Shown here in pieces: positions 3,406 to 63,620 of a DNA stretch of 64,000 nt (positions are counted from its first letter, which is position 1; every line of letters begins with the position of its first letter). Source of the DNA: Macrostomum lignano (Eukaryota); NCBI GenBank assembly GCA_002269645.1, contig NIVC01000917.1, positions 242,578 to 306,577 of the forward strand, given 5' to 3'. The translations under genes and the position numbers were made by a program. The notes beneath the pieces are model-generated. The model saw nothing but the letters and a program-made list of their open reading frames with translations, ran no database searches and was not told the DNA's origin.

Positions 3406-5935
3406 CTTCAGACTTCAGTATATGTGCAGTTGATTTTATTGAACCGGAATATGGATATTGGCACAAACTTCCTAAGAATATTTGTGCGAGACAGACCGCT
3501 GTTATCTTGCCGTAAAAATAAAATAACAAGTTTCTTCATTTTTACATAAAGTAATAAAAAACTATTTTTTTCAAATGTCTGAGAAATTTGTTTTATTTTG
3601 TTTATTTAACAAAATTCCCACTTATGGAAAATAGGGCGTCGAAGGAAGAACACGTCGCCACTACCACTACTTACTTTTTCTTCACTGGTAGGCCTACTTA
3701 CTTTAATATTTCTTACTAATATTCAATTTCGTATCTAAAAAGGATAATTGTAAGTCTTCTTTACAGTCACATTAAAAAAATATTGACTTTTTGTAACCTT
3801 CAAATGATTTTCATGAACCACGTTTTAACTTTAATATTTACCAAATACATGAGACTACTAGACTAGTCTAGTCAATAGTCAATACAAAAATAAGTCAGCT
3901 TCTTATAATGATAAGCCTAGTCAGTATCACTATTTGCATTGGTTTTAACTAGGCCCTAGTTTTTTGTGCCTTTAGGGTTATTACTAGAATATATGGATAA
4001 TAATCTAATTTTGCATGCTATACGTACCTACCCATAGCCATAGGCCTATGCTATAAATATGATATGACCAAGGTTTTTGTGCTATTAGAATATAGTTAGC
4101 ATCTTTAATTTCTAAATTGTATCTGAAATTAGACCTTGGATGCAATTTTGCATCATAGGCCTATCATTAGCAAAAAACATAAGATATGATGCAATATAAG
4201 CTATATATAGGCATGCATTTGCATATAACATAAGTTTAGATGGCCTATATAGCAAAATCTAAAAGTGGAGATATTTTGAAAACTTTTAATTCAGTTTTGT
4301 TCATAACAAAATAGATATACTATGTTATTATAAACATAAAATGTGCTTATCTTATTAAGGCCTAATTATTTGGTTTAGTAATGAAAAGGTATTAATATTT
4401 TTATAAAAAATCTTTACTTTTTTAAAATGGCCAAAATGTATTATAGAATCCATAGACTATATTATGCTAGGTACATGCCTAAATAAAAATTGAATAATTA
4501 CAAAGATGATTCAAGTTGAGGACTTTTAAGGTTAAAAATCCAGTTGCCAACTGGCCCTTAGGGCTCTATACTCCAGATCATATATAATATAGTATATGCC
4601 CAAAAATTTGGGCATGCATTGGCCTTGTATACCAAAAGTAGACATGCATAGTTGGTCTATATTACTCTTACGAAAATAGTATGAGTGCACATCTAGTATA
4701 CACTTTATAGAATCACATAAAAAAGTTATTGTAAAGTAGAAAAAAGTTCATTTTAAGAATAAATTTTAAGTTTTCTATGTTTTTAAGCTTGTAATAAAGT
4801 ATTAAAACAAATCTTTGCATGTATCAATTTTTAATATAAATAGTATTGCTAAAAATTGTATAAAAATTAACCTTATTATTTATCAAAAAGGTTCTATTAC
4901 ACAATTAAAAAAGGTTATTTATTGCCAATATAAACAAAGGTCATTTATTGTTGCAAAACCAATGTAGTTTTGAAGATAGGCATACATTCAATTTTTTGAG
5001 TGTGCATTTATAATTATTCAATTTTTGTTCAGGCATATACCTAGCATGATTTGGACTATGGTTGGGGTTCAAAATCTAGTAGCCAATGGCTATTTTTGGT
5101 TGCCTATTGGTAACTAGTCAAATTCTTGAGGATAGATACTTCTAAGGCTATATTTGAAAAGCAGAAATTTGTTCTCTCAACTCTAAGATTGCTATTTATG
5201 TTGCAAACAACAATAAGCTAATAATTCTATTATATCAATCCATATGGCACTTTTATTTAACTTAAAATTTTTTCACCTATTAGTCCCGCCTATACACTCA
5301 TAATTTCTCATATAATGCTTAGAGTTGTTTCAAAATTTCAATTTTGATTTTCCAAAATTTGGAATTTTGATTTCAAAAAAATTCAAAAGTCAAAATTTTG
5401 GAAGTGTGTAAAAGAGTAGCTAAAAGAAAAACTAATTTTTGCTATATATATATGTATTTTATGCATTTTGTTTTGCATAAGCAGTCAATCAAAAGTAAAA
5501 AAGTGAGTTTGAGTCATACTAAACATTGTTTTTCTGAATTTTGATTTCATTAAATTTTAATTACATTTTTGGAAAGTTAGCAAATTTTGATTGCAACAAA
5601 AAATGATTTCTAATAATCCTTAAGTGCAATAAAATAATTTGACTCTTTTTCTAAAGTGCACGTCCACAACTTTTCAACATTAATTCCAATAGGATGGAAC
5701 TATTTTAATGGAAAGGTTGTTATAGACATTTAAATTATATTTAAACAAAAATAATTTTTTATTCTAAATATAGTTCTCATTGTTAGAATACAAATAAAAT
5801 AAGATAGTCAGCAAAAATAATTTTTTTAAACAAAGATTTTTAAATCATTGGATTTTTAGAAGTAAATAATTTTTTAATCAGTTTTCTTTCAATTATGAAA
5901 GCCATTGAAATTATAAATGTTCATAATTATCAAAT

Positions 5936-6221
5936 AGCCCAACAAGTAAGCCGGCTTTGCAAATCTATTGTTTTTATATTTGCAAAGTGTGCACAAACTG
6001 GGCATACCAACCCTAGTTGCCATATTAGTTGCCGGCGCCCCGGACTCTGCCAGCGGTGCGGCTTTTGTTCGCGCCCAAGCTTTGAAGCGCGCCATCTGAC
6101 GCTGCTTTTGTGAACTGGCAGCGTACTCTGTTGTTGTTGTTGTTGTTGTTGTTGTTGCCATATTAAGAGGATTTTTTTATAGTTGCTTCAAAAATTAATC
6201 CTAGAGCTGGCAACAACACTA
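5936..6221 (+). ncRNA. Box H/ACA-like guide RNA, copy 1 (interrupted by a 126-bp insertion)
   Basis: Hairpin 1 GCCCA..TGGGC with upper stem GCTTTGCAAAT/ATTTGCAAAGT; H box ATACCA 6004-6009; hairpin 2 GTTGCCA/TGGCAAC with AGGATT/AATCCT; ACA at 6216-6218. Confidence 0.7.
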
Positions 6222-6380
6222 CTATTAATATAAAAAATAGAATCCATACAATTACTTTAACTATGTATAAAAATTACAACAGCATATTATATGAGCTCAG
6301 TATAAATGTATCAATATATATCATTTTATGTATATGTATCTTATCAGTATTAATTTTTAGGACTAATAAACTAACTAATT

Positions 6381-6521
6381 AGCCCAGGGAGTAAGCCGGC
6401 TTTGCAAATATTCTATTGTTTGCAAGGTGTGCACAAACTGGGCATACCAACCTAGTTGCCATATTAAGAGGATCTTTCATTTTTTAGTAATTGATTGATC
6501 CTAGAGCTGGTAACAACATTT
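6381..6521 (+). ncRNA. Box H/ACA-like guide RNA, copy 2 (about 141 nt)
   Basis: Hairpin-hinge-hairpin-tail layout; H box ATACCA 6444-6449; ACA 6516-6518 followed by TTT; both pockets about 14-15 nt from their boxes. Confidence 0.8.
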
Positions 6522-6750
6522 AAACAATTTTTTAGTACATCTTGTTATTCTTCTCAAATTGAAAGGGCATTTAAAACAATAAAGAAGATAAATTATTTAT
6601 AATCTAATTATAAAAAAGATTATTCTGGACCCTCACAACATTCGTTAGTTCTTTAGGGGAACAATTAGAATTTATTTTTAATGGCTTTTTTCAACTATGT
6701 TCTCTAATCTCTGCTCTAGCTCAGTATTTATGGCTAATAAACTAATGAAT

Positions 6751-6898
6751 AGCCCAATGAGTAAGCCGGCTTTGCAAATTTATTGTTTGAAATAATTGCA
6801 AGGTGTGCACAAATTGGGCATACCAGTCTTGGTTACTATATTAAGAGGATCTTTTCATATTTACTCATTGATTGATCCTAGAGCTAGTAACAACATTT
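6751..6898 (+). ncRNA. Box H/ACA-like guide RNA, copy 3 (about 148 nt)
   Basis: Same layout; H box 6820-6825; ACA 6893-6895; compensatory stems GCCCAAT/ATTGGGC and GTTACTA/TAGTAAC. Confidence 0.8.
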
Positions 6899-7421
6899 TT
6901 GTCAGACTTGGCTTTACCTTATTATTCTAATTAACTAAATGAAACATACATGCGCAACAGTCGGCCGAGTCGGCCGATCCGGCCGACCAATTTGGCAGCC
7001 AACCAAGGAAGTCGCAAAAAATGCCCACCCAAAAAAACCAAGTAGTAGTACTAAGTAGCTGACGAGGCATTTTAGCTTAAAAAGACAGTTATAGTTACTC
7101 CTGCCGTTTACCCAAAGTTGCGTTAATTTTGCTTTAGGGTTTTTTTACATGTAAGTCGCATTTTTGGCCAAAAACTACGTCGCATTTTTGTTAAAACTAA
7201 GTCGCACGGCTGACAGAATTTTGGAGGTTGCGCATGTATGAAATGAAATATTAATGAGCAAAGGTCAAAGACTTCTAGACTAAAGTGCTTGTATTACAAT
7301 GATGATAGAATATTGTGAGAAAGAACTCTTGACTATTGAGAGTTGGAAAACTCTCCAATTGTTGAAGTTTAAGATGCTCATAGAGTTTTATTTTTTGTGT
7401 TAAACTATTGAATTCCCCTAA

Positions 7422-9345
<1,924 letters not shown>

Positions 9346-10404: not shown

Positions 10405-11050
10405 TCACCCTTCAGTGTCTCTGGGAATCGCCCCTCACCAAACCCCTCTCCCCAAAAAATCGCCCTTCACTGCCCCCTTCAGGAATCGCCCTTCACTGCC
10501 CCCTCAGGAACCGCCCTTCACTGCCCCCTCAGAAATCGCCCTTCACTGCCCCCTCAGGAATCGCCCTTCACTGTCCCCCTCAGAAATCGCCCTTCACTGC
10601 CCCTCTGGAATCGCCCTTCACTGCCCCTCAGGAATCGCCCTTCACTGCCCCCACAGGAATCGCCCTTCACTGCCCCCCTCAGGAATCGCCCTTCACTGCC
10701 CCCACAGGAATCGCCCTTCACTGCCCCCACAGGAATCGCCCTTCACTGCCCCCCTCAGGAATCGCCCTTCACTGCCCCCCTCAGGAATCGCCCTTCACTG
10801 CCCTCACAGGAATCGCCCTTCACTGCCCCCCTCAGGAATCGCCCTTCACTGCCCCCACAGGAATCGCCCTTCTCTGCCCCCTCAGGAATCGCCCTTCACT
10901 GCCCCCCCTCAGGAATCGCCCTTCACTGCCCCCCTCCGGAATCGCCCTTCACTGCCCCCCTCCGGAATCGCCATTCACTGCCCCCCTCCGGAATCGCCCT
11001 TCACTGCCCCCTCCGGAATCGCCATTCACTGCCCCCCTCAGGAATCGCCT
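10405..11050. repeat. About 24-bp minisatellite GGAATCGCCCTTCACTGCCCCCTCA
   Basis: Tandem copies between the ARF and plastin 3' ends. Confidence 0.95.
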
Positions 11051-12101
11051 TCATGGTCCCATTAATATTCCTAGAAGTCAATACGCTTTCAGCCTCTAAG
11101 TGTCATTGGCGTGATGATCCTAGGAACCCAGCAAATCCCTGTTGTCTTCTAGAAGATACTTATAATTAACAGCAAAACTGGTTATAGATAGTGCCTTGTA
11201 TTGTTTTGTAAAAAGCATAGAATATAGTAGAATAATAAAGTTGTATGCAAAGGCCAAATGTGTTTGAACTACAACTAAGAGCACACGGTTGCTAATTCAT
11301 TAATCGAACTGGAAGCCAGGAAGAAATTCGGAAGCGAGCAACAGTTGCCAAGCAGGGAATGACATCGCGGAACTAGAGTAATAAAAATGGGCACAGGATA
11401 AGAGAACACGATGTGCCGAGATGTCTGTGACAGGTTACGAAGGTGATTAATTGAGGCGAGCGCACAATCGGATCAAAACGAATTAATTAACTGAATTTAG
11501 ACAGAAGCCGTCGCGTTGCCGAGTAAATATGAATTAATAGGTATAAACTACTGTTACTGTACCTCTGATTCAGGGCGAATTAATTTTCTATTGTACGCTA
11601 ATAAATATTAATGGTTTCAATAATTAGCAATTAACATTTGGCAATGTCGAGTACAATTAAACAAAGGAACACAATGGCTACAAAAAACAAATGGAATAAA
11701 ATTATTTAGCCGAATTCCCAATTGGAGCCAATTGTCTATAATTATATATACTGGAGGTAAACGGCGGGAGTAACTCATTTAAGTTATGAATGAGTTACCA
11801 AAGTTCCTCGTCAGCTAATTAGAATAGTCTATGGCTCCAATTTGGGGCTTGAACTATTCAAATAAAAAAATTCGCATTATTGGCATCAGTACAATTATAA
11901 TTTTATCGAATCTCAAGGGCAATAGAGATTTATCACAATTCGATAATTGAATCATTAATTAATATAATGTCACCGTACAAACAATAAAAATAGATACGCA
12001 AATATCGTTTCACATTTGTATTAGTTTTTTACAGAGACGAACACAATCTGGTTAAAGCGGAGTTAGTGTTGTGCATAGGTAGCAGGCGGTAAGCTAAGCA
12101 A

Positions 12102-13535
12102 TCAAGCGCTGGGCTTGTTGATCTGGAAGTCGAGGATCATGAGACAGGCGAACACGGTCATGATCATGTTCTTGTTCACCTGCACCACATGCTCTGGCAG
12201 AGCGTAGATCCGGCCGCCAATCATGCGACTCTTGCTGAGAATGAACCGGGCCCTGTCCAGCTGATCTTTCATGCCGGCTGCGATTGAGGTGTCCACTGTC
12301 TTTGGCTTGATGGCGTCAGCCAGCTCAAGGATCACCATGCCGTCAGCCAGGGACGGGTCCTGGCGGGGTGGGAGTTGTCCAGCGTTCAGTGCTTTGTTTA
12401 GTAGTCTCAGAATCTGGGGATCTGAGGGGCACTCGATCCCAATCAGCTATGGTCCTGGATGAATCTTAAATAATACTGAATTCTCCTAATCCTGTTGCTG
12501 ATAATGAATTCTCCTAATCCTGTTGCTGATAATGAACACCCCTAATCCTGTTACTCATAATGAACACTCCTAATCCTGTTGCTGATAATGAACACCCTCT
12601 AATCCTGTTGCTAATAATGAACACCCCTAATCCTGTTGCTGATAATGAACACCCCTAATCCTGTTACTCATAATGAACACCCCTAATCCTGTTGCTAATA
12701 ATGAACACCCCTAATCCTGTTGCTGATAATGAGCACTTCTAATCCTGTTGCTCATAATGAACACTTCTAAATTTTTATAAAACGCCCAAAAATAGTCCCA
12801 GTAAATTAACATTAGCCTACTAATAGTAGGGTGATAAGGCAAAATCTACAAAATAGACATCATTGGGACAGCAAATGGAAATGACGAAATTTTCAAGTTT
12901 CGATTTTGCCACAGAATTTTCTAAGCCTAAAATGGTAGGTTTTAATTACCAATGCCGCTAAGAAGCAGAAAACTGCTGTTCAAAGAAGCGATAGAATAAA
13001 ATTAGCATCTCCAAACATGGCAATCAAATTGCGCAGGGGTGAAATGTTTTTGAAGAGAGCAAACAATTTTCTAAATATGGAAACTTGGCGAGTTTTTAGC
13101 TGTTGCATTTTTTAACTGTCACCCCCCCCCCTCTCAGACTCACATTCCCCGTAAACAATGGCTAAAAATAGTGCGGCACAGGTCAAGACGGAGCCTTCAC
13201 TCAACAAGCAGACTAACAAAAAAAACTATTCTGACTGCAGAAGTTTCCAAGGGGCCGCCGCTGGAGGGAGGGGCGGTAGTAGAGGAGAGGGGTGGCTGCT
13301 GTACTCGCACAGAAGCAGCAAACTCAAGGATGCCGAACTTGCGTCTGCTAGGCGAAACTTTCAAGCATCAATAAGGAAGCACAAAAATAGTTCGTATATC
13401 ATTTCCTTGCAAGCTATCACTACTGCAGACCTAGGGGTTTAGATACAGACAGACAGAAAAAAGCGGGCAGCAGACAGATAAAGGCGAATACAGACAAGCA
13501 CAGCCATACGAAGGCAGACAGACAGACAGACATTA

Positions 13536-13620
<85 letters not shown>

Positions 13621-16600
13621 CTAAGACAGACAGACAGACAGACACACACTAAGACACTAAGACACTAAGACAGACAGACAGACACGACAGACAAGCAGAC
13701 ACGGGCAGGCACAGCCAGTCTCACCTTGAAGCTCTTCACCCGGGCGGCCTTGCCGGCGGCCTCCAGTTTCTGATTGGCCCACTGGATAATCTCGTCATCG
13801 TCAATCTTCCTGGTGCCGCCGGTGAGCTGCATGAGCAGTGACAGGGTGTAGGCGCGCATCATCTGGAACACCAGGCCGAGGGTGAGCTTCCTGTCGCCGT
13901 CGCGAATGTCCTCGGCGCCGATGTTGGTCATGGGCAGGCCGATCTTGCGGCCGCACTCGATAACGTAGTTGCAGTTGGCCTGCCACTGGAACAGCTTCTT
14001 ATTAGGCACGAAGGTTTTGCACACCTTTGACCAGGGCACCACGCCAGGCTTGATGTGGTCCATCAGCGTCAGCAGGATGAGGCCGTTGCGCAGGTCAGAG
14101 TACAGGTCCTTCACAAACGGCGACACGCCCAGACTGTTCATCCAGTTGCGGAAAGTCTTCTCTTCGAGCGTCTCCTCGATTACTTCCACTTCCACGTCCT
14201 GGACGGCCTCCATGGCTGGGTAGTTATTGAACAGGTTGGCCACGAAGGCCATGTTCAGCTTCTCCCGATTTCGTCCGGGCTCGTTGGCGAAGGCGATGTC
14301 CTCCGACACCACAAAGACCGCGGCGTCCAGCTTGTCGGCGTTGGACAGGACACCGTCGGCCCGTTTCAGCCGGTCCGCGCTGGCCAGGACCTCCTGCGGG
14401 CTGCGCATCTCGGAGCGCTTGTCAGCCGGGGCGATCTGCGACAACAGATGCGCGTACGCCTCCGAGTCCATGATGTCATCCTTGAAATTGTGCACCCTTG
14501 TCCGTGCCGGCCTTGGCTAGCTGGTAGTTCACCCAGCGTAGCAGCAGCTCCTCGGGACTGAGCTGTTTCAGATCCTCGAGAGTCTCACCTGGCAGCAGCA
14601 GGGCCGCCAGCTCCTTGTGCTGCGACAGGGTGATGTCCTTCATTAGGCCGATGCGAATGATCTGCCAGATTAGGCCCAGGATAATGTGCGGCCGGCACTC
14701 TTTGATGTCGTTGGCGCCAATATTGACAATGCAGCAGCCGATTGACTCGGCCGAGTTCACTGCAAGCACCAGATTCTCGTGCATCCGGAATCCGGCAGAG
14801 CCGCCCTTCAGCTGGGCCAGCTTGTTCATGGCCTTCTCGTGGATGGTGTCCGGCACGGCGCTGTTGATCAGCTTGCACAGCACCAGGCCGTCGCCCAGTT
14901 TCTCGTACAGCTCGTCAGTGTTGCCATCCACGGGCAGCAGGTGGAGAGGTCCGGTCCTTCTCCAGCATCTTGTTGATCCAGCCGGCGTAGCCGCGTCGCT
15001 CCGAGTCGCCGATGGTGTGCAGCGTCCACTCATTGCCGGTGCCGCTGATTTTCTGTGCGCATTATTAGAGTGTTTCAGTTTTATTAGTGTTTGCAATTCT
15101 AATGAAATGCTGAATTCCACAATTCTAATGCTGAATCCGCAATTCTAATGCTGAATTCCACAATTCTAATTCTGAACTCCGCAATTCTAATGCTGAATTC
15201 CACAATTCTAATTCTGAACTCCGCAATTCTAATGCTGAATTCCACAATTCTAATTCTGAACTCCGCAATTCTAATGCTGAATTCTACAATTCTAATGCTG
15301 AATTCCACAATTCTAATTCTGATACTCCGCAATTCTAATGCTGAATTCTACAATTCTAATGCTGAATTCCACAATTCTAATCTGAACTCCGCAATTCTAA
15401 TGCTGAATTCCACAATTCTAATCTGAACTCCGCAATTCTAATGCTGAATTACAATTCTAATTCTGAACTCCGCAAATTCTAATGCTGAACTACAATTCTA
15501 ATGCTGAATTCCACAATTCTAATTCTGAACTCCGCAATTCTAATGCTGAATTCTACAATTCTAATGCTGAATTCCACAATTCTAATTCTGAACTCCGCAA
15601 TTCTAATGCTGAATTCCACAATTCTAATTCTGAACTCCGCAATTCTAATGCTGAATTCTACAATTCTAATTCTGAACTCCGCAATTCTAATGCTGAATTC
15701 TACAATTCTAATTCTGAATTCCACAATTCCAATTCTGAACTCCGCAATTCTAATGCTGAATTCCATAATTCTAATTCTGAACTCTGCAATTCTAATGCTG
15801 AATTCCACAATTCTAATTCTGAACTCCGCAATTCTAATGCTGAATTCTACAATTCTAATTCTGAATTCCACAATTCCAATTCTGAACTCCGCAATTCTAA
15901 TGCTGAATTCCATAATTCTAATTCTGAACTCTGCAATTCTAATGCTGAATTTCACAATTCTAATTCTGAACTCCGCAATTCTAATGCTGAATTCCACAAT
16001 TCTAATTCTGAACTCCGCAATTCTAATGCTGAATTCCACAATTCTAATTCTGAACTCCACAATTCTAATGCTGAATTCCACAATTCTAATTCTGAACTCC
16101 GCAATTCTAATGCTGAATTCCACAATTCTAATTCTGAACTCCGCAATTCTAATGCTGAATTCCACAATTCTAATTCTGAACTCCGCAATTCTAATGCTGA
16201 ATTCCACAATTCTAATTCTGAACTCCGCAATTCTAATGCTGAATTCCACAATTCTGATACCGATTCCCACAAAGTCAAAGTTTGCATGACTAAAGCAATA
16301 TAAAAATGTACTGAAAACTCAGCAAAACATAACATAACTTCGTATGGGACAAGCATTCAAAATGTTTGTTACTGTGGCATGCAATTGCAATATTTATTTA
16401 TTTAGCTTTATTCAACTTGATAAAATCCCGCTCTAGTTAAAACTCCAAGCCGAAACGCCTTATAATCCGCACGTGACTAACTGACCATGCACGTGTTTCA
16501 GGTCAAGCGGAGGACGCGCAACAAAATAAAATACCGGCATGCATTCATGCATTGTAACTGTGTTATTAATCTTAAAATGAAAGTTGCAAATTAAAACTTT

Positions 16601-22430: not shown

Positions 22431-22889
22431 TCAAGGAGTGGGATTCTCTCACAACAGAAGATAATAAAGCACATCTATTAAATAAAGCAACAAAGAAAGC
22501 ACTATTTATAATTAGGAAAAATAACAGGTATACAGAAATGATAACATTTGTTAAATTTGTTAAAAGAATAACGTTGCTCGATCTTGTTCTTGTAAGGAAA
22601 CTAATGATTGTGAATGCTTGTGCGAATGTTCGAGTGTACAAATATAACTAATAAATATACTCGTATGTAGCGATGTAAATTTATAACGACTTGTAAAATC
22701 TGCCCTGCAGTGTTAGCCTATTTCGCATTCTGGAAGGGTAACGCAGTGTTGGTTAAGAATGGCTTGGGTTTCAAAACTATGGAGCGCCAGGAATAAGAGA
22801 AATATATATAGTAGTTTAGTTATTGCAAATTAAAATAGTAAGTACAGAAATGATGTATATTCATTGTACTCAAAATGCCAGATTTTTTA

Positions 22890-23525
22890 CACTCAAGTAC
22901 TCAACAATCTCACACCTGTTCTACACACCAGTACTCAACAATCTCACAACTGTTCCACACACCAGTACTCAACAATCTCACACCTGTTCCACACACACCA
23001 GTACTCAACAATCTCACACCTGTTCCACACACCAGTACTCAACAATCTCACAACTGTTCCACACACCAGTACTCAACAATCTCACACCTGTTCCACACAC
23101 ACCAGTACTCAACAATCTCACACCTGTTCCACACACCAGTACTCAACAATCTCACACCTGTTCCACACACACCAGTACTCAACAATCTCACACCTGTTCC
23201 ACACACCAGTACTCAACAATCTCACACCTGTTCCACACACACCAGTACTCAACAATCTCACACCTGTTCCACACACACCAGTACTCAACAATCTCACACC
23301 TGTTCCACACACCAGTACTCAACAATCTCACACCTGTTCCACACACACCAGTACTCAACAATCTCACACCTGTTCCACACACCAGTACTCAACAATCTCA
23401 CAACTGTTCCACACACCAGTACTCAACAATCTCACACCTGTTCCACACACACCAGTACTCAACAATCTCACACCTGTTCCACACACACCAGTACTCAACA
23501 ATCTCACACCTGTTCCACACACCCA
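22890..23525. repeat. 35-39-bp minisatellite CCAGTACTCAACAATCTCACACCTGTTCCACACA(CA)
   Basis: Tandem copies. Confidence 0.95.
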
Positions 23526-23831
23526 GTAAATCTAGAATCACACAGAAAGCACTCCTAAAGAGTAAAAATAATTTTTTATGCTACAGTGCACCAGAAAAAT
23601 CGATAATATAACAAAAATACAGGTGTAAATTTCGGCAAAAAAGTTCAAGCAAAATGCCTATATCAAACTCAATTTTAATCCATAATACTAGAAATCTATT
23701 CTAATGATAAATTGCCTTTGAGCTGCGGTTGATTTTTCCAAAGATCTAATATCACTAATAAAACAGCAAGCAGCGTGTTCTACTACTTATACGAGTAGTT
23801 TATAAAGTCTTTTGCTCTCTAAAAAATAACT

Positions 23832-26800
23832 TCAATGCTCAGCGGCTCGGCTGAGCACTGACCGGAGCAGCCGTTCGCCGTAGATCTGCTTCCGCAACCG
23901 GTTGGTCCTCTTGACGGCTTCTCTGCGCTCCCGCTCCAGGCGGGCGGCGACAGTGGCCGACACCGACGACGTGTGCGCTCGGCCTGACCCAGTTCGCGGC
24001 GGCGGTTGCGGCTGCGTCAGCGGCGGCGTCGGAAGGCGAAGCTCGGCATCGGCGACGGCCTGCCGAGCTGCGGCCGCCGACTGCAGTCGATCGCGGCGGG
24101 AGCGGCTTCTGGCGGCCAGCACCGCTGCCCGCTGTTGACGTCGACAAGCCGCCGAGTTCTCGGCCGCGTCGGCGCTGTTAGACAGCGGCAGAAACCAGCT
24201 AAGCGGCTTGGCAGCAACAGCGTTGTCATCGGCAACCGTAGAAGCCAGATTAGCGTCCTTAGCAACCGAGACCTTTTTCACTTTGGAGGATCCGTTACTA
24301 GCAGTCTCTTTCTTAGCTTGGCTTCTCGAACCGTTCAGCTTATAGCTGACGCCGTCGATTGCTTTTGCCTTAGCAACAGCGTCCTTAGCGACGGTTTTAT
24401 CAATGGCAGCGGCGGCCCTGGCAGCGCAGTGCGGAAGCGTCATTTCGTCGAGAGACTGCGTAGCGTCTGTGCGATCGGTAGACAAAGCGTCATCAATAAC
24501 GGTTGTGTCCTCGCGATCGTCTTCCGAATCTGTCCTTTCCATAGCAACTACAGACTGGGCCAGACGCCTCTGTTGAATTAGTCGGCGCAGAATTTCGACT
24601 CGTTCCCGGCGACGCCGTTCGGCGGCCACCGCCTCCAGCAGTCGAGCCCGCTGGCGGAGCAGCGCAGCCTGCAGCTCGGCTGTCGTCGCGTCGACGCCGC
24701 TACCACCGCCGCCGCAGCTGCCGACTTCGACCTCTGAGTCGTCGTCAACGTCGAAGCCTGCGACAGCCGAATCCTGCGGCGGCCAGTCGACTGCTCGATC
24801 GGGGACGTCCAGCAGCAGCGCCTGCACAGGGTCGGCCAGCACGCGGCGAAGGCGGCGCAGCTCCGACCGCCTGCCCTGCCGATGGAACCGTTCCCAGGCC
24901 GCTTGAAGGCCTTCAGGCGGCGGCGGATCGCGGGGACTCCGGGCGTACAACAAGCTTTTGGCTCTGGCTGTAGTAGCGGAGGCTGCGCCAGTGGCGGATT
25001 TGCCTCGCGGCGAGCGGCGACTGCCGAAAGCTTCGGCCGGGAAGCCCGGCGGCCGAGCGTCGTCCGAGCCCGGATGCGTCGACTCACGAGTGTCGGCGCT
25101 GGTGTCCTGCGACCTGGCCGAGTCCGGCGCCGCCGCTGCTGCCACTGCGTCCTCCTCCCATCTGGCCGAATCCGGCTCTGCATCGCCGAGTTTCCTCCAG
25201 CCGGCTGCAGAGTTTACAGTGCGCGGTGTACTTTAGTTCCACTTATTCCTCGTCATCTCTGATATCTCCAGATATCTCTAAGTCACAATCAACCGAAAGC
25301 AAATGAAGCGTGTTAGGAAATCTACGAGTATTAAGTAACTTCAGCATCAAGAAAAATACCTTCATAGCCTCATAGGAAATGCCCTAGCAACTAAAGCGTC
25401 ATGGGAAATACCCTAGCAACTAAAGCGTCATGGGAAATACCCTAGCAACTAAAGCGTCATGGAAATACCCTAGCAACTAAAGCGTCATGGGAAATACCCT
25501 AGCAACTAAAGCGTCATGGGAAATACCCTAGCAACTAAAGCGTCATGGGAAATACCCTAGCAACTAAAGCGTCATGGGAAATACCCTAGCAACTAAAGTG
25601 TCATGGGAAATACCCTAGCAACTAAAGCGTCATGGGAAATACCCTAGCAACTAAAGCGTCATGGGAAATACCCTAGCAACTAAAGCGTCATGGGAAATAC
25701 CCTAGCAACTAAAGCGTCATGGGAAATACCCTAGCAACTAAAGCGTCATGGGAAATACCCTAGCAACTAAAGCGTCATGGGAAATACCCTAGCAACTAAA
25801 GTGTCATGGAAATACCCTAGCAACTAAAGTGTCATGGAAATACCCTAGCAACTAAAGCGTCATGGGAAATACCCTAGCAACTAAAGCGTCATGGGAAATA
25901 CCCTAGCAGCAAAAACATAATCGAGCCCTTAAACCGACACAGGCACGCACCGGAAGTTCTGCCAGCAGCAGCTAAGTTGCGAGCACCCTCATATTCGGGA
26001 CTCGGACTGCTCAGGAATCCCGATCCCGGACCAGCCGTCGTTGTCCTAGGCGGAGGCGCCAATGCGGCGCTAACGGGCCGCCGACCGCCCAAATCGGCGC
26101 CGTAGTCCCATTTGAGTCGCCGAGGCTGAGTAGATTCACCCCAGTTCAAATGCTGCAGCTGCTGCTGCAAATCCAACTGCAACAATGGCTGCTGATGCTG
26201 CCTTAATGGCAGCCGATATCCGTGATTAGCTAGTCTAGCCTGCAACGTTAATTATATTGCACTTTTAGCAATATTACAAGCATAAAAACAAACCTTATAG
26301 ATTTAGTATATTTAGATTTCAACAATTTTTTATTTATCGGTTAGAATGAAACCAATCACAACCTGGTTCACCTGAATTCGTGCATGACAGGATTGGTATC
26401 ACACCGTGATGAGGAATAAATAAACTAATCTATGACTCAGCTATCCTATGACCCAACTAATCTATGACTCAGCTACCATATGATCCAACTACTCTATAAC
26501 TCAGCTACCATATGATCCAACTACTTTTTTATTAGAGGCAGGGGGGTTGTGTGCACCCTGGCGCACTTTAAGCGACATAGGCACACAACCGGCGAGAGGC
26601 ATTACTGCCCATTCCGCCGACTCCCCTGAGCAGGCACACAAGCGCGCGGATACGTACGCAGGCACACACTCACACAGGAGTGTACAGCGGCCCTAACTTT
26701 ATATTATCGTTAGGCATGTACACTTCACTGGGCCTTGGGGGGTTGGCTCTCAAGGCCGTTAATTGCACGAGCAGAGCCAAGCCGAGATTCCAATTCAGCC

Positions 26801-39521: not shown

Positions 39522-41516
39522 ATGGACAAACTGAAGAAAGTCCTGAGTGGAGATGATGAGGAAGCGGAGACAAGAAGTGGCATCTTCTCTGATGTAAGTA
39601 GTTCATATACTTTGTTGTGTATGTTTTTTTAAAATTAAATTAAGTCTTTAGGCTTATCAGCTAGCAGTGTTTTCCATCATTTTTATTCTCATTTAGCGAT
39701 TAAAGTGCAGATTTTTCTCTTTACTTTAGGAAGAAGACGATGTTCCTCTGCTCAGAAGTGTGGGTATTGTATTCAATCTCTGTTTTATCCATTTCCTTCA
39801 GTTTGTAATATTTCCTTCATGACAGTACATAGGTATTGTTTGTTATAAAAATCTAGCACTAACTAATTTAGCATGCATTTCTTAGTCATTGTTTTGTAAC
39901 ATTGTGTAATTACCTGACTGAATAATGTTTTCTGCTACCAATTGGTCTAAAATTGCTTATTACATTCCTGTGTCTGTAACAGTGTGGCCTATGCAGTGGT
40001 GTTGGTGCAGCTAGACTTGGACACAAAGTTGTATAAAATTATCTTGTTTTCCGTCTGCACAGTATTTATTAATTAATGTTGTCTTTTTCTTCTTTTGCAT
40101 ATATTTTTACCTCATTTAGATTTGCGCTACTGTCAGTACAGTAGAGCGGTTTTAACCACTAAAAAACCCAACAATAGCAAGAATTTGACTGTTTCTTTCG
40201 ATTGCAGATAAACGAGGGCGCAACTTTCAGCTGGAGCACTCGGATCAAAGGCTTCCTGATCTGTTTCTCCATTGGCTGGGCCTTTTCTCTGCTGGTAGGC
40301 GGCGCTCCAATTTTCGAATATGCCTACAGTCTAGAGATCTAGGTGTGCTTGTTCAGATTCAGAGTTCTAGACAATCATGTTGAGCCATCACCCCTCCCAC
40401 AACACAGATCTCAGTTTCTGAGCCACCGTCACCACCCTCCCAGATCCTCCAGTTGCTGGGCCACTGTCACCCTCCCAGATCCTCAGTTGCTGGGCAACCG
40501 CCACCCTTCCCAGATCCTCAGTTGCTGGGCCACCGCCACCCTCCCAGATCCTCAGTTGCTGGGCCACTGCCACCCTCCCAGATCCTCAGTTGCTGGGCAA
40601 CCGCCACCCTTCCCAGATCCTCAGTTGCTGGGCCACCGCCACCCTCCCAGATCCTCAGTTGCTGGGCCACTCTCACAGATCCTCAGTTGCTGACCCACTC
40701 TCACAGATCCTCAGTTGCTGGGCCACTGCCACCCTCCCAGATCCTCAGTTGCTGGGTCACTGCCACCCTCCCAGATCCTCAGTTGCTGGGTTACCGCCAC
40801 CCTTCCCAGATCCTCAGTTGCTGGGCCACTCTCACAGATCCTCAGTTGCTGGGCCACTCTGACAGAGCCTCAGTTGCTGAGCCACCCTCCCAGATCCTTA
40901 GTTGCTGAGCCAGCCTCCGAGATCCTCAGTTGCTGGGCCACTCTCACAGATCCTCAGTTGCTGGGCCACCGCCACCCTCCCAGATCCTCAGTTGCTGGGC
41001 CACCGCCACCCTCCCAGATCCTCAGTTTCTGGCCACCGCCACCCTCCTGGATCCGTCTTATCAACCGCCCTCTAACAATGTTAAAATGAATAAGATTTCA
41101 AAATCAATACACTGGATATCAAGTGTAAGATACAAACCGGAGTGTTTAATTAAACCTTACCAAAAAATGTCCCACAACTGCAGGGCAGCTTCTTTCTGGC
41201 CATCCCCGGTCGCGGGGTCATCATATTCGGGATATTCTACACGTTCGGCAACATCCTGTCGCTGACGTCTACCTGCTTTCTGATGGGCCCTCTCAACCAG
41301 CTGAAAAAGATGTTCGCGCCAACCCGGCTGATTGCCACACTGCTCATGCTGCTATTCATGACCCTGGCTCTGCTGTCTGCTCTTCTGTGGAACAATGTAG
41401 CCCTAACTGTGCTATTCTGCATTCTGGAGTTCCTGGCGCTCACCTGGTATTCAATTAGCTATATCCCCTATGCTAGGACGGCTATTAAGAATGCCGTCAG
41501 CGCATGCGTTGGTTAA
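39522..41516 (+). CDS. SFT2D: SFT2-domain vesicle transport protein (SFT2D1/2-like), 163 aa; exons 39522-39593, 40208-40294, 41184-41516, plus a candidate 30-nt exon 39730-39759
   Basis: [10 protein letters not shown] start, [45 protein letters not shown]; phase-0 GT-AG introns. Confidence 0.95.
40425..41050. repeat. CCCAGATCCTCAGTTGCTGGGCCAC minisatellite in the SFT2 intron (a related array lies at 41750-42050)
   Basis: Tandem copies. Confidence 0.92.
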
Positions 41517-43653: not shown

Positions 43654-46513
43654 TGTCGATTAGACAATAAACTAATAGAGCGAGATATAAGTGGTGCAGA
43701 AAGGAAGAGAGGAGAAAGAAGTGAAGGGCCTAAGCCGCGGGTTGAAGTTGTATTTATACTAACAATGATGAACAGGCCAGCCAAATTGTCTGTGGTAAAT
43801 GAACGGTTACGATAGTCTGTGGGAAAGGCATGGTAGACAAAGGGAGACGGCTAACTGAAAAGTACAAGGTAATAGAAAGTACAAATATTTGGAGGATGGA
43901 AATCCGACAGGCTCGGGGGGCCAACGGGTAACGATAGATAGAGGGGATTTGAACGGCAAAAACAGTAGAATGATTAAATAGCGAGTATTTGCGCATTGAG
44001 TTTAGTTCGTGAAAGCGGTCAACTGTTTAGTCAGGTTGTAACAATGCCGGGCCGGAAGCCGAGCCGGCAGGCGGGCCAGCAGACGAGACGGGCAGCATCT
44101 TCCTTGGTGTCAGTGCCGATGACGATGTTGCCGACATAGAGGCTGCCAATGATGCGCTCGAGCTCGGATTGGGTGAGGTCGGAATCTCCCGAGTTAATTG
44201 CGTCTAAGCATATCTTGTGGAGGACCGCCAGGAGAATACACGCTCTGGGAGAGGCGCCCATGACGATGCGAGTGAAGCGCCAGAGCTCGAAGCTGCCCTG
44301 TACTAGCGGCTTGGTGATGTACTTCGGGAGGATGATGCAGAGGACGTCGCGGTGAGGTTCGTGAACGCCTTTCTGGTAGAAGGCGGCCTTGAGGTCAGAT
44401 GAGATGCCGAACTGGTGAGCGCGGTGAACTAGAAGGACTTGAAGCATTGACGTCAGCAGGTTGGGCCCAGGCTCTAGGAGGTCGTTGAGTGTGGCGCCAG
44501 CGAGCGAGGTCTTGGTAGAAGCGTCGACGACGGGGCGGATCTTCGTCGTGTTGGAGCTCCTCTTTATGACTGGGAAGTGCGGCAGAGTCTGGATGACTGG
44601 GCCAGCTACCTGGCCAGGGCTGACTCGTTCCAGGACACCTTCTTGCTTGCGCTTCTCGAACTCGGCGTAGTAGGCCTCGCGCTCGGGAAGGCTGAGGCGG
44701 CGGTGGGTGGCTTGAGCACGACCGAAGGCCTGGCCAAAGTTGGAAGGTAGGAGCTCGGCTCCAGGTTCGAATGGCAGGTCGACGGAGATTCGAACGTCGG
44801 TATCGCGCATGATGGAGTCGGGCAGGCGTTCCTGGGGTCTGTCGTTCCTGGCGTCGGGCCTTTCAGCATCCTTTGCCGTGCCGAGAGCTTCGAGGTTGGA
44901 CATGCTGTCCAGAAGTCGGTCGAGGTGGAGCCCATCGTTGTTAGGGAAAGTGTTCGCAATGACCACTTGCGAGGAGCCGAGGAAGCCGTTATGACGAGAG
45001 GCTGTGATATCAAGGGAGCCGTCGAGGATGGCCCCGAAGGGTGTCGGGCAGGCTTTGAGAGTCGGTCGAAGCGCTTGGGCGGGTACGTTAGGGCTGATAG
45101 GCTGACTGGCGTTGCTGCAGGGACAAGAACTCTTGGGCTCTTGGCTGGCAGTGGAACTTAACTTCGCGGCTGGGCGAGATTTAATGTCGGCGCAAGGAGC
45201 GGGGTCAGGTCGATAGGCGTCCGACGATAAGCTATTGCCAATGCTGCGGGCTTGTAGCGGCTGGGAACTGGCGTTGCCCAGAAGGATGGCGGAAGCGAAG
45301 GTCGCAGCCGGAGGGGTAGCGGAAGCGGCTCTGAGCGTCTTCAGCTTGTAATCGAGGTGGCACTGGAGCTGTGTCATAGTTGGCATGAGAGGCTGCCCGT
45401 TGGCAGCACGAAGGTTGCGGATCTCGCTCTGCAGCTCGATCGGGAGGCGGCTCCACAGGGCGTAGACGTAGCCGTCGATGGTGCTGGCGGGCTCGCCAAG
45501 GCGGAGGAGCTGGCCGGTAGCGAGTCGGAGGGCGTCGGTGTAGGTCTCGAGCTCGTCTATGTCGGAGGCAGAGTTGCAGTGAAGGGCGAGGAGACGCTGG
45601 AAGGAGGCGTTCTTTTGCTCCTGTGTGTCGGTGTAGTTGGCCTGGAGGACACGGCAGGCTTCGGCGTAGGCGTTGGGTTGGTAGGCATTGAGGGCACCGA
45701 GCTTCTTGAGAGCGGAGCCGGAGAGCAGACCGCGAAGCGCCTCGAATTTGTCGACGTCGTTGAGGCTGGAGCGGTCAACGCGGTAGACGAAGGCGTCCCA
45801 GAAGCCCGGAAATGCAGCAGGGTCCGTACCGTCGAAGGTCGGGAGATGTACGTTCTTGTGAATGGTGGAGCGGACGAGCCCGGCCGGATCGTGAGCATCT
45901 GGTGCGGGTGTTGAAGCAGTTGGTGTTGAGGCTGGACGGACGGTGGCGGCGAGCTGCTGAATGAGCTGCTGGTTCTGCTGCATCATCGCGGTCATTGAGG
46001 CGATGAGGGCGTTTACGTCGACGGAGGCAGCGGGAGCTGTTGCAAGGATCGGAGTTGTGGAAGTAGCAGCGAGAGGAGCAGTAGATGTCGTGGCGGATGA
46101 AGCAGCTGGCGGCGGGTCACTGGCTTCGACGGGTGGCTGCTCCGCGGCAGTGGTCGCTTCAGTAGAGGTTGAGAGGTGGTCGTTCTGGGACTGCTGATGG
46201 TCGCCAGATTGGTCAGTTGTCGATCGTGTGATGACCATGACGCTCTGCTACCAAAATTGTCGATTAGACAATAAACTAATAGAGCGAGATATAAGTGGTG
46301 CAGAAAGGAAGAGAGGAGAAAGAAGTGAAGGGCCTAAGCCGCGGGTTGAAGTTGTATTTATACTAACAATGATGAACAGGCCAGCCAAATTGTCTGTGGT
46401 AAATGAACGGTTACGATAGTCTGTGGGAAAGGCATGGTAGACAAAGGGAGACGGCTAACTGAAAAGTACAAGGTAATAGAAAGTACAAATATTTGGAGGA
46501 TGGAAATCCGACA
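43654..46513 (-). mobile_element. BEL/Pao LTR retrotransposon, internally deleted, recently inserted
   Basis: 256-bp LTRs 43654-43909 and 46258-46513 with no difference seen; TGTCG..CGACA ends; 5-bp TSD ACAGC; PBS TGGTAGCAGAG complementary to the initiator tRNA-Met 3' end. Confidence 0.95.
44031..46238 (-). CDS. 735-aa Gag (DUF1759-like) fused to truncated RT; no RNase H or integrase
   Basis: LPTFDG..F..FW..F, DKFEALRGLLSGSA, LPHFPVIK...TTKIRPVVDAS, LNDLLEPGPNL, SDLKAAFYQ; catalytic motif reads YVGN. Confidence 0.9.
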   Translation of the reverse strand: MVITRSTTDQSGDHQQSQNDHLSTSTEATTAAEQPPVEASDPPPAASSATTSTAPLAATSTTPILATAPAASVDVNALIASMTAMMQQNQQLIQQLAATVRPASTPTASTPAPDAHDPAGLVRSTIHKNVHLPTFDGTDPAAFPGFWDAFVYRVDRSSLNDVDKFEALRGLLSGSALKKLGALNAYQPNAYAEACRVLQANYTDTQEQKNASFQRLLALHCNSASDIDELETYTDALRLATGQLLRLGEPASTIDGYVYALWSRLPIELQSEIRNLRAANGQPLMPTMTQLQCHLDYKLKTLRAASATPPAATFASAILLGNASSQPLQARSIGNSLSSDAYRPDPAPCADIKSRPAAKLSSTASQEPKSSCPCSNASQPISPNVPAQALRPTLKACPTPFGAILDGSLDITASRHNGFLGSSQVVIANTFPNNDGLHLDRLLDSMSNLEALGTAKDAERPDARNDRPQERLPDSIMRDTDVRISVDLPFEPGAELLPSNFGQAFGRAQATHRRLSLPEREAYYAEFEKRKQEGVLERVSPGQVAGPVIQTLPHFPVIKRSSNTTKIRPVVDASTKTSLAGATLNDLLEPGPNLLTSMLQVLLVHRAHQFGISSDLKAAFYQKGVHEPHRDVLCIILPKYITKPLVQGSFELWRFTRIVMGASPRACILLAVLHKICLDAINSGDSDLTQSELERIIGSLYVGNIVIGTDTKEDAARLVCWPACRLGFRPGIVTT

Positions 46514-50006: not shown

Positions 50007-56048
<6,042 letters not shown>

Positions 56049-59510: not shown

Positions 59511-62241
59511 CTACATTGGTTCGCTAGTCGTCGACTTGCCGCGCTTGTTCCCCGCGCTAGTCTCGCTGTCGTCGCGACGCTCGCCACTGGCTCTAGAATC
59601 ATCGCCAGTGTGAACAGCGGCCGAGCACAGCTGGTGCATCCGCAGGGCGACGTGAACCCACAGTTCGAGCAGCTCGCACACAGTCAGCAGAGAGATGCCG
59701 CACCACAGGCCCAGGATGCCTGACAAATAGGGCGTTCGGTTGAAAATTGATCAAATCGACCAAGTCGATATGGGCATGTGGTGCCCGAGATGGCCAGATC
59801 GATCCTCGCTCCAGTTCGATTCTGCGGTGTTGCCCTCATTAATGTGGGGTTTGCGGGCACCGAATTTGGACCTACACACACACAGAATTAGTGTGCATGC
59901 CTGTCTGAGTATGTTTGTGCGCATGCGTTCTCTGGGGTTTGCGATACGGACCTTGCTAGCTGTGAAACGGACCAACTTTAGATTTAGATTTAGATTTAGA
60001 TTTAGGAGCTTCAATGAACCCCTGGAACTAGCAGTGACGTCAGAGGATGGCCTTGGTAACTGTCGAGATTATCACTTGTGCGCAGGGGCGTCGCCATGGA
60101 TTTTATGGTGGGGGGGACAAAGCCAAGAATTCAACATGTACATGTACATGACTAAATTCGTGCATTTCCATTATTTCAAGAATCGTGTTGTCAGCCATAA
60201 TTTTGGCGCCGCAGGTACTCATTTTGGCGTTGCAGGCACTCATTTTAATGCCATAGGCACCATTTTGGCGCCGCAGGCACATTTTAGCGCCGTAGGCGCT
60301 ATATTTTGGCGCCCTGAAGAAAAATTATTGATTACCACGAGTCAAAAGGTGGGGTGGGGGGGGAAAGTATTGGCATGTCCCCCCATAGCTTTTACTGGGG
60401 GACATGCCCTCCCTGTCTCCGTCCGGTGGTGACGCGCCTGCTTGTGCGCATGGTTTTATAAGCAGTCATTTTCTTTCAGTACAGTGTCCGTCATAGGTAA
60501 ACTGTGCTTGCTCCCAATTCACAAACCTCCCATATCGGCCAGCAAGTTCTTGACCGGGTAGGCCTCCTCTTCGATTTTCTCTTCGCCTAGGGGCTCGGAC
60601 GCGGACACCGACACCATGGCCAGGCGGTCCTGCAGGACGCTCATCTCGTAGTCGAATCTGGTCAGATTAGCTGTCAGCTTGGCTGTTCCGCGAAAGTTTC
60701 GAGTCAGGGCCAGAGCGCTTAGGTAGGCGGAGTACAGGCTCACTGGCCGCGGAATCGGCTGACGGAGTTGGGGTAGCCGAACCTGCTGGCCAGGCCGCTC
60801 AGGAATTTTAACAGAGTGTCGCGACGAATGTTCGGCCACGTGTTGGCCACTTGGCTGACTTTGAACTCGAGGGTCTCGCAAGGCAGCTTGCAGCGGCTTC
60901 GGGCCTCGCTACGGTAGCTTTTCAGCAGATTTAGCTGGCGAATATAGCACTGGTCAGTGGCGTACAAGTTCTCGATGTCAGTAGTGTTAAAGCAAATCGG
61001 GTATTTGGCGTACAGCTGCTCGGGGATGGGCAGAAATGTTGGCAGGCAGCTGCAGTTTTCGGCGAATCTATGTAGCACAAACTCGTTGAAGCAGTCCTGC
61101 AGAGTGCTTGCTTTGAATTTCATCTTCCTTCGCATTGGTCCCCTGCAGTTTTTTGTTCTTGTTAAAACATCTTTATCATGTAATTGCACAAGCGATTCAA
61201 ACAGATTTACCTGAATTTGCTGTAGCTCTGAAATAGGTCCCTTATAATATCTGTCTTGATAGTCCAATTCGAGGCCTCAATTGGTCCGGTAAACAGCGAG
61301 TCCATCCGGTCGCTGATGGAGTTCGGGTACGTATTGATTTAAAAAAGTGCCTGATGTAAAATCAGGCATGGTTGATAATTGACAATGCAGGAGGGATGCG
61401 TTAGTGCATTAGTGTATCCAATATTTGTAAGTGGGGCGCACCAGTGTCCAGAATCTAGACCCACTTGGACTGGGTACTCACAGTACTTTGTCGCTCAGGC
61501 TGGCAGGTGTCCAGGAGTCAAGCATATACGTTACTGGCATAACTTCACGAAGGCACTCTCTGACTGGTGGCTTTGAGTACCTGACAGTTCTATCGTATCG
61601 CAGTTTCAGCTTGGTGTGCTGCGCAGGCATGACCTCCAGAGCGTTCGCTGCCCAAGGGAATGTGCCTTCCGGGACCGCGATCACCTAACAGTGTAAGGGA
61701 GCGGATGGTATATATTAATCAAATTCAGGGAGATGTGAACAACCAGGGCGCAATCCAAGTAGTCCAAGCATTCGCAAAGGGTGTACAACAGCCCTGACTT
61801 GTCAAGCGTATCGATTTCGTGTTGTCTTTAGGGTTGGCGTAAGCAATGGTCGTGTTTTTCATTCTACTTATCAAGAAGCGAAAGCCACCTTTATCGCAGA
61901 ACTTTCGCTGCCACCACCGCCTAGCACAACATTGGCCAACTTGTTGGCCTGGCGGTAAACTCCGCCAAACGAATCAGTAGCATCGCTGAACAGTTGCACT
62001 TGAAAGATAACATCGGCCACTTCACTTGAGCTGAGGCCACGTAGCAGTGGCTCCTTCAACAGTCGCTGGCAGACGCCCAGTTCTGGCTGCAGTACCGACT
62101 GGAAATTCGATGGACCGCACGACTGGCCGTTAAACTCGCACTTGATCAGGCCGTCGGCCAGGTCGACACCGAACTGTCGGGCCAGCGGTGCGCTACCAAC
62201 TCGAGCGCGCACCGATCCCGTCACGGCTGGACTGGCCTTGT
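59511..62241 (-). CDS. DEG/ENaC-family channel, FaNaC-like, 3' part; exons 61889-62241, 61482-61684, 61211-61312, 60527-61142, 59511-59719; further exons likely near 63660-63800 and beyond the window
   Basis: CEFNGQSCGPSNF, ENCSCLP, CKLPC.TLEF, TM2 LLADMGGILGLWCGISLLTVCELLEL; one frame break near 60765. Confidence 0.88.
60083..60440. mobile_element. hAT-type MITE, 358 bp, in the channel intron
   Basis: TIR CAGGGGCGTCGCCA / TGGTGACGCGCCTG; perfect 8-bp TSD CTTGTGCG. Confidence 0.88.
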
Positions 62242-62544: not shown

Positions 62545-63620
62545 TATATAAAGGACTGGGAGGCGTGGTTCGGTTCCTATCAAAAGGACTGGGAGGTGTG
62601 GTTCGGTTCCTATCGAAAGGACTGGGGGTGTGGTTCGGTTCCTATCAAAAGGACTGGGAGGTGTGGTTCGGCTCCTATCGAAAGGACTGGGAGGTGTGGT
62701 TCGGCTCCTATCGAAAGGACTGGGAGGTGTTGTTCGGCTCTTATCGAAAGGACTGGGGGTGTGGTTCGGCTCCTATCGAAAGGACTGCATGGGAGGTGTG
62801 GTTCGACTCCTATCGAAAGGACTGCATGGGAGGTGTGGTTCGACTCCTATCGAAAGGACTGCATGGGAGGTGTGGTTCGACTCCTATCGAAAGGACTGGG
62901 AAGTGTGGTTCGGCTCCTATCGAAAGGACTGGGGGTGTGGTTTGGCTCCTATCGAAAGGACTGGGGGTGTGGTTTGGCTCCTATCGAAAGGACTGGGAGG
63001 TGTGGTTCGGTTCCTATCAAAAGGACTGGGAGGTGTGGTTCGGTTCCTATCAAAAGGACTGGGAGGTGTGGTTCGGTTCCTATCAAAAGGACTGGGAGGT
63101 GTGGTTCGGCTCCTATCGAAAGGACTGGGAGGTGTGGTTCGGCTCCTATCGAAAGGACTGGGAGGTGTTGTTCGGCTCTTATCGAAAGGACTGGGGGTGT
63201 GGTTCGGCTCCTATCGAAAGGACTGCATGGGAGGTGTGGTTCGACTCCTATCGAAAGGACTGCATGGGAGGTGTGGTTCGACTCCTATCGAAAGGACTGC
63301 ATGGGAGGTGTGGTTCGACTCCTATCGAAAGGACTGGGAAGTGTGGTTCGGCTCCTATCGAAAGGACTGGGGTGTGGTTTGGCTCCTATCGAAAGGACTG
63401 GGGGTGTGGTTTGGCTCCTATCGAAAGGACTGGGAAGTGTGGTTTGGCTCCTATCGAAAGGACTGGGGGTGTGGTCCAGCTCCTATCGAAAGGACTGGGG
63501 GTGTGGTTTGGCTCCTATCGAAAGGACTGGGGTGTGGTCCAGCTCCTATCGAAAGGACTGCATGGGGAGGTGTGGTTCGGCTCCTATCGAAAGGACTGGG
63601 AGGTGTGGTTCGGCTCCTAT
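62545..63620. repeat. About 32-bp minisatellite GGTGTGGTTCGGCTCCTATCGAAAGGACTGGGA
   Basis: Tandem copies; the three long ORFs here are repeat artefacts. Confidence 0.97.

Follow-up and report, generated by a model that had tools for sequence, protein, structure and literature searches.

In invertebrates, box H/ACA snoRNA genes are known from tandem and intronic clusters, for example the a, b and c isoforms of the Psi18S and Psi28S snoRNAs of Drosophila. In such clusters, diverged isoforms of one guide follow each other over a few hundred bases and occupy non-coding parts of a housekeeping gene or of its neighbourhood. The locus described here shares this arrangement, although the Drosophila snoRNA families in Rfam have no sequence similarity to its units. 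Another described RNA to which the units can be compared is SNORA70 (U70/ACA70), annotated as guiding the formation of pseudouridine 1692 in human 18S. In flatworms, snoRNAs have hardly been annotated, and no description of a Macrostomum snoRNA was found in the literature searched.

Within the 64-kb stretch of flatworm DNA analysed here (called the window below), the plus strand of positions 5936-6898 contains three paralogous units (Table 1). All of them are built in the same order, namely hairpin, H box, hairpin and ACA followed by three nucleotides. The H box reads AUACCA (ATACCA in DNA), is invariant in all three copies and follows directly after hairpin 1; the ACA is located one nucleotide after hairpin 2 in each copy, and similarity between the copies stops 3 nt past it. 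Taken as a whole, the locus is best explained as three tandemly duplicated genes of one canonical box H/ACA snoRNA with a target in 18S rRNA, encoded on the plus strand upstream of Arf1, and we regard this reading as very probable. The initial annotation had proposed three tandem H/ACA-like paralogues with the hairpin-H-hairpin-ACA layout, and all of these elements were found at the positions given for them. The unit size of 140-150 nt claimed there applies to copies 2 and 3 (140 and 147 nt) and fails for copy 1, which carries a 126-nt insertion and measures 285 nt. A spurious 90-aa ORF (5889-6161, minus strand) overlaps copy 1.

Table 1. Features of the snoRNA-like cluster and of the neighbouring Arf1-type gene; positions are those of the window.
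Feature	Positions	Length	Strand	Parts and remarks
Copy 1	5937-6221	285 nt	+	5' hairpin 5937-6003; H box 6004-6009; expanded hinge with insertion
Copy 1, 3' part			+	3' hairpin 6154-6214; ACA 6216-6218; tail CTA
Insertion in copy 1 hinge	6028-6153	126 nt	+	GC-rich; ends in (GTT)9 (6130-6156); seen as alignment gap
Copy 2	6382-6521	140 nt	+	intact; 5' hairpin 6382-6443; H box 6444-6449
Copy 2, pocket strands			+	5' hairpin 6390-6399 and 6428-6436; 3' hairpin 6462-6468 and 6503-6507
Copy 2, 3' part			+	3' hairpin 6455-6514; ACA 6516-6518; tail TTT
Copy 3	6752-6898	147 nt	+	intact; 5' hairpin 6752-6819; H box 6820-6825
Copy 3, pocket strands			+	5' hairpin 6760-6769 and 6804-6812; 3' hairpin 6839-6845 and 6880-6884
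Copy 3, 3' part			+	3' hairpin 6832-6891; ACA 6893-6895; tail TTT
Upstream motif of copy 3	6718-6750		+	AGCTCAGTAT(A/T)(A/T)ATG (RNA: AGCUCAGUAU(A/U)(A/U)AUG), then CTAATAAACTAA; repeat families D7, D12; alignment
Pyrimidine tract and CAG	7421-7445		+	ccccttcccccaccag; ends 9 nt before the Arf1 ATG
Arf1-type GTPase gene, candidate host gene	7446-9345		+	exons 7446-7703 and 9055-9345; 182 aa

Judged at the level of sequence, the units are box H/ACA snoRNAs of an uncatalogued family that falls into no Rfam family. With the class they share the two hairpins, a hinge box of the ANANNA type (AUACCA), an ACA placed 3 nt before similarity ends and a large internal loop in each hairpin, the 3' one of which is complementary to rRNA in two parts on either side of an unpaired U-N. 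Their size of 140-147 nt, their multi-copy state and their position beside a housekeeping gene also agree with the class. In the 5' hairpin, lower stem 1 (GCCCA.../...UGGGC) stands around an internal loop with the strands AGUAAGCCGG and UGUGCACAA, and the upper stem of 9-10 bp is formed by CUUUGCAAA/UUUGCAAGG. The 3' hairpin consists of the lower stem GUUGCCA/UGGUAAC, the loop strands UAUUAAG and AGAGC and the upper stem AGGAUC/GAUCCU, and is followed by A-ACA and three bases. We found no structural difference from the class. The distance from the upper stem to the box is 13 nt in hairpin 2 (to ACA) and 16 nt in hairpin 1 (to H; 15 nt if a G.U pair suggested by RNAalifold forms), as counted on the alignment of the three copies (A4); these values lie at the edges of the usual 14-16 nt and depend on the counting convention. 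The CAB box (UGAG) is absent from both terminal loops of all three copies (A4 columns 30-43 and 102-124), so by this criterion the units would not be Cajal-body RNAs.

Folding supports the proposed structure. The fold of copy 2 reaches -45.5 kcal/mol (z = -4.3) and that of copy 3 -42.3 kcal/mol (z = -3.95), and in both cases none of 200 dinucleotide shuffles was as good. An unguided RNAalifold consensus consists of the same two hairpins as the minimum-free-energy folds of these two copies. Standard pairs occupy 95.6% of the stem cells; shifting the 3' partners by one to three columns lowers this share to 28-43%. The stems previously listed as covarying are indeed present, both those of the GTTGCCA/TGGCAAC, GTTGCCA/TGGTAAC and GTTACTA/TAGTAAC series and the pairs AGGATT/AATCCT versus AGGATC/GATCCT and GCCCAG/CTGGGC versus GCCCAAT/ATTGGGC. 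Changes that affect both sides and still leave the bases paired were found in 4 of 30 stem pairs among the three paralogues: one in lower stem 1 (G-C/A-U), two in lower stem 2 (G-C/G.U/A-U and C-G/U-A) and one in upper stem 2 (C-G/U-A). Since only three paralogues are compared, and 22 of 500 shuffles of these three sequences equal the observed covariation, covariation constitutes limited evidence. The strand is better defined. A covariance model of the units, R1, scores copy 2 at 165 bits and copy 3 at 177 bits on the plus strand and gives at most 23 bits on the minus strand, and four G.U cells of the plus strand would read A.C on the minus strand. Both the model scores and the G.U cells thus identify plus as the RNA strand.

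In our reading of the alignment, the distribution of substitutions is more telling than covariation. Pockets and boxes are invariant in 41 of 42 columns, compared with 18 of 46 in the loops, the tail and the hinge outside the H box, in agreement with the earlier statement that pocket strands do not vary and loops and spacers diverge. The cores are 80-84% identical between copies, and the 120-nt flanks 45-58%, which is the level of shuffled sequence with the same composition (56%). The view, already taken in the initial annotation, that selection acts on RNA structure is supported by this pattern as a whole, in which pockets and boxes do not vary, stems are compensated, loops change freely and flanks are saturated.

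In the sequence searched, the units are also confined to this place. A 17-nt core motif occurs three times in the window (0.24 expected). Searches of five M. lignano Arf loci (126 kb) with blastn-short, motif patterns, regular expressions and R1 revealed no copy of the unit; the downstream neighbours of these loci are not those of the window, and the loci may be non-orthologous. A pattern made of the 5' hairpin and the H box had no match in a scan of the metagenome collection. Three copies in 64 kb and none in either comparison set are not the picture of a dispersed DNA repeat, the case that had been named as speaking against an RNA gene family.

Copy 1 deserves separate description. Its hinge is about 150 nt long, versus 12, owing to the insertion between the H box and hairpin 2. 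On either side of the insertion stands one copy of a 12-nt direct duplication, GTTGCCATATTA (6016-6027 and 6154-6165); from this duplication, the GC-rich composition and the terminal (GTT)9 we infer a retroposed fragment with its target-site duplication. The 126-nt insertion had no further copy elsewhere in the window and none in the M. lignano Arf loci. For the inserted sequence itself, a GC-rich domain of its own is predicted, with CUGCCAG/CUGGCAG and GCGCGC stems; it could be a retroposon fragment or filler DNA. The 12-nt duplication leaves hairpin 2 whole, and copy 1 therefore retains every part of the unit. Its 5' lower stem stops at 5 bp, the sixth position being an A.C mismatch, and model R1 recognizes the copy in two separate pieces of 94 and 65 bits. 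On account of the hinge insertion and the weakened 5' lower stem, copy 1 may be impaired. Copies 2 and 3 look fully functional.

We then ask which RNA the pockets could address. Target sites were scanned for as uridines flanked by complements of both strands of each pocket, using 120 eukaryotic rDNA stretches from metagenomes; in the complete ones, bounds of 18S, 5.8S and 28S were set by Rfam. For the 3' pocket (AGAGC / UAUUAAG), the best site in all three complete rDNAs, which belong to unrelated metagenome eukaryotes and do not represent the 18S of the host species, is the conserved 18S sequence AGCUCU[U]UCUUGAU. The pairing amounts to 6+6 bp with one G.U. Of 300 shuffled guides per rDNA, 5, 1 and 2 scored as high in the three rDNAs (p of about 0.003-0.017), so that the match beats 98-99.7% of them. 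The 15-nt site, AGCUCUUUCUUGAUU, is present in at least 48 rDNA loci covering the region, its context being GCUCUUUCUU(G/A)AU, and a few taxa carry CUUAAU there, which would pair perfectly with the 3' pocket. In the proposed complex, the internal loop of the 3' hairpin would pair with 18S through AGAGC with GCUCU and UAUUAAG with CUUGAU. Where the upper stem begins, with 13 nucleotides of the guide between it and ACA, a U-U would stay unpaired, and the first of these two uridines would be isomerised to pseudouridine.

The target uridine is located 59 nt 3' of the U homologous to the m1acp3-pseudouridine at human position 1248 and yeast position 1191. From this distance it corresponds to human U1307 and yeast U1250. 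Computation thus supports guidance of the 18S uridine equivalent to human U1307 by the 3' pocket. In the part of the complete human 18S modification map that covers this region, nothing is entered between Um1288 and position 1326, so that U1307 appears there as unmodified. The literature searched names no pseudouridine at human U1307 or yeast U1250. Because the human map is empty at this place, as far as that part of it goes, and no published precedent was found, the predicted modification would be lineage-specific.

The 5' pocket (AGUAAGCCGG / UGUGCACAA) behaves differently from the 3' pocket. Contiguous and one-mismatch scans of the 120 rDNA loci and the three complete rDNAs gave no rRNA target above shuffled guides. 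The pocket is presumably functional, since it is as invariant as the 3' pocket. Its 5' strand contains UAAGCCG, complementary to the universal 18S sequence CGGCUUA, which is situated 3' of the U equivalent to human pseudouridine 1232. As a guide for this U, the pocket does not exceed shuffled guides: pairing on the 5' side covers only 3 bp, 215 of 500 shuffles are as good and the invariant UGUGCACAA is left unexplained. We treat the CGGCUUA match as a lead only. An informal comparison with U1, U2, U4, U5 and U6 snRNAs and 5.8S, which we do not count as a test, showed no convincing site.

The proposal that the units form an unannotated guide family agrees with the Rfam results, in which no Rfam 15 family reached its gathering score anywhere in the window. 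In permissive searches, run on a 1.6 kb region and on copy 2 alone, the best match was to the 5' hairpin of SNORA70 (RF00156), which scored 16.1 bits (E = 0.34 to 3.5), whereas the gathering score of this family is 40. The 5' pocket strand and the 5' upper stem align, with the consensus AUUAAGCCG in SNORA70 and AGUAAGCCG here, whereas the alignment comprises only 40 of 135 model positions (10-49) and the 3' hairpin finds no match. Membership in SNORA70 was rejected, the match being below the gathering score and limited to half of one hairpin. One idea that arises from our reading of the complementarity is that the 5' pocket of SNORA70 might serve position 1232.

The cluster occupies a stretch of 25-30% GC within the AT-rich 1.5 kb upstream of Arf1. 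With M. lignano Arf the Arf1 product shares 96% identity, and with any other full-length Arf among the matches listed at most about 91%; at the DNA level the Arf1 exons are 84-91% identical to M. lignano, and nothing else in the M. lignano Arf 90% cluster comes closer to the Arf of the window. The gene has one intron of 1.35 kb, filled with minisatellite; this array (7919-8968) takes up most of the intron with 1 kb of 28/43-nt units. The pyrimidine tract with CAG in front of the start codon is probably a 3' splice or trans-splice acceptor. An acceptor at this position suggests that the snoRNA cluster lies in a 5'-UTR intron or outron of Arf1.

Short conserved elements precede the units. The motif AGCTCAGTAT(A/T)(A/T)ATG is found at 6718-6732 before copy 3 and at 6294-6308 before copy 2. 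In copy 2 the upstream sequence is split into two parts (6294-6308 and 6356-6379), and 47 extra AT-rich bases separate the motif from the RNA; upstream of copy 1 only TATAAAT is kept (5912-5918). Copies 1 and 3 each have the TATA-like heptamer some 25 nt before their first nucleotide. The motif could be a TATA-like promoter element or, with its GTAT, the splice donor of a host mini-exon.

A MITE-like element of 296 bp (6945-7240) is situated between copy 3 and the Arf1 start codon. Its terminal inverted repeats of 14 nt (CATACATGCGCAAC, 6945-6958, and GTTGCGCATGTATG, 7227-7240) are perfect; it also has an 8-bp target-site duplication, AAATGAAA (span 6937-7248), and internal tandem repeats of 22-24 nt. 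A relative with 74% identity lies upstream of an M. lignano Arf gene (locus L005, 7064-7361).

Several other origins of the three units have to be weighed against a snoRNA gene cluster. They could be the remains of a tandem DNA duplication or local repeat, untranscribed or decaying, in which the hairpins arose by chance and the similarity is merely leftover. The small number of copies, all of them adjacent, the damage done to copy 1 by the insertion and the lack of an orthologue in the M. lignano loci searched would suit such a history. Neutral decay, however, would ignore the boundaries observed here: flanks and spacers have reached random level and the cores have not, pockets and boxes were spared, changes in stems are compensated and similarity ends exactly at ACA plus three. 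For this reason a mere leftover of duplication seems very improbable to us. Still less credit can be given to a cluster of microRNA precursors or to a transposable element of the MITE or SINE type. Mobile DNA does occur in the region, as the MITE-like element demonstrates, but the units themselves lack terminal inverted repeats, target-site duplications and, in the sequence searched, dispersal, and a tRNA or SINE origin was dismissed as no tRNA-like sequence was found in them. As to microRNAs, Rfam returned single-hairpin matches to miRNA families with E = 3-9; their scores of 12-16 bits compare with gathering scores of 58-80, and stems of 5-10 bp broken by internal loops of 5-11 nt are too short for Drosha/Dicer.

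A different question is whether a genuine H/ACA RNA must be an rRNA guide, or only that. The RNA could be of the orphan or processing type, or guide modification of an snRNA, a spliced leader or an mRNA, the 18S match then being fortuitous. An invariant 5' pocket that matches no rRNA above shuffles fits this reading, and so does a predicted 18S site that is unmodified in the relevant part of the human map and named as a pseudouridine nowhere in the literature searched. On the other hand, the 3' pocket match ranks at the top in three independent rDNAs with the p values given above and a correctly placed U, and the terminal loops without CAB box argue against a Cajal-body RNA. We consider a role outside rRNA unlikely, though the most serious of these alternatives, and retain the snoRNA with an 18S target as our reading of the locus.

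From what is known of the class, the life of such an RNA can be outlined. Each unit would be transcribed either within the 5' region of Arf1 or from its own promoter. Dyskerin (Cbf5), Nop10, Nhp2 and Gar1 would bind the RNA co-transcriptionally, and exonucleases would trim the transcript to the core from the first hairpin to ACA plus three nucleotides, about 140-147 nt in length. A more elaborate version can be put forward tentatively, as a scenario that we think somewhat less probable than its opposite. According to it, the RNA directs an 18S pseudouridine of the flatworm lineage, equivalent to human U1307/yeast U1250 and belonging to the head domain, where it immediately precedes the GGUGGUGCAUGGCC strand; the 5' pocket serves a non-rRNA or lineage-specific substrate; and Arf1 pre-mRNA is trans-spliced, the genes perhaps being released from its outron or from introns of its 5'-UTR.

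Rfam contains no model that recognizes these units, and R1 can be used for annotation of related genomes. The prediction is concrete, as it concerns one named uridine of 18S. If validated, the family would enrich the rRNA modification map of a lineage used as a model of regeneration and stem cells by a guide RNA and probably also by a pseudouridine site. Otherwise the units are what would be expected in any animal genome and raise no new question on the workings of the H/ACA RNP.

Further features stand in the remainder of the window. A plastin/fimbrin gene, present as its C-terminal half and encoding calponin-homology domains (13665-15120, minus strand), converges on Arf1; its product is 83% identical to an M. 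lignano protein, the next best matches, at 52-53%, being from monogenean flatworms. From the Arf1, plastin and MITE comparisons we conclude that the DNA belongs to a macrostomid flatworm distinct from the sequenced M. lignano strain, or else to a paralogous region that has diverged strongly. A (CAGA)n repeat (13515-13701) overlaps the 3' end of the plastin gene and matches arrays in two M. lignano loci (L001 and L002). Minisatellites are unusually dense in the window, for which Tandem Repeats Finder reports 80 rows in 64 kb, and many of them create long spurious ORFs. Arrays are located at 10458-11053, 15106-16255, 22889-23528, 25366-25908, 40405-41054 and 62550-63620, and simple repeats include (GTTA)286 at 51701-52842 and (ACT)66 at 54396-54593. 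A 568-aa ORF (50007-51713, plus strand) ends where the (GTTA)n array starts; it contains a DUF4550 domain (E = 7.5e-26), and a word-indexed protein search at E <= 1e-5 gave no homologues. The 735-aa ORF at 44031-46238 (minus strand) encodes a DUF1759 domain, as in the gag-like part of BEL/Pao-type retrotransposons, and is probably a retroelement remnant. Finally, an exon-sized ORF at 60740-61267 (minus strand) carries an amiloride-sensitive sodium channel (ASC, DEG/ENaC) domain.
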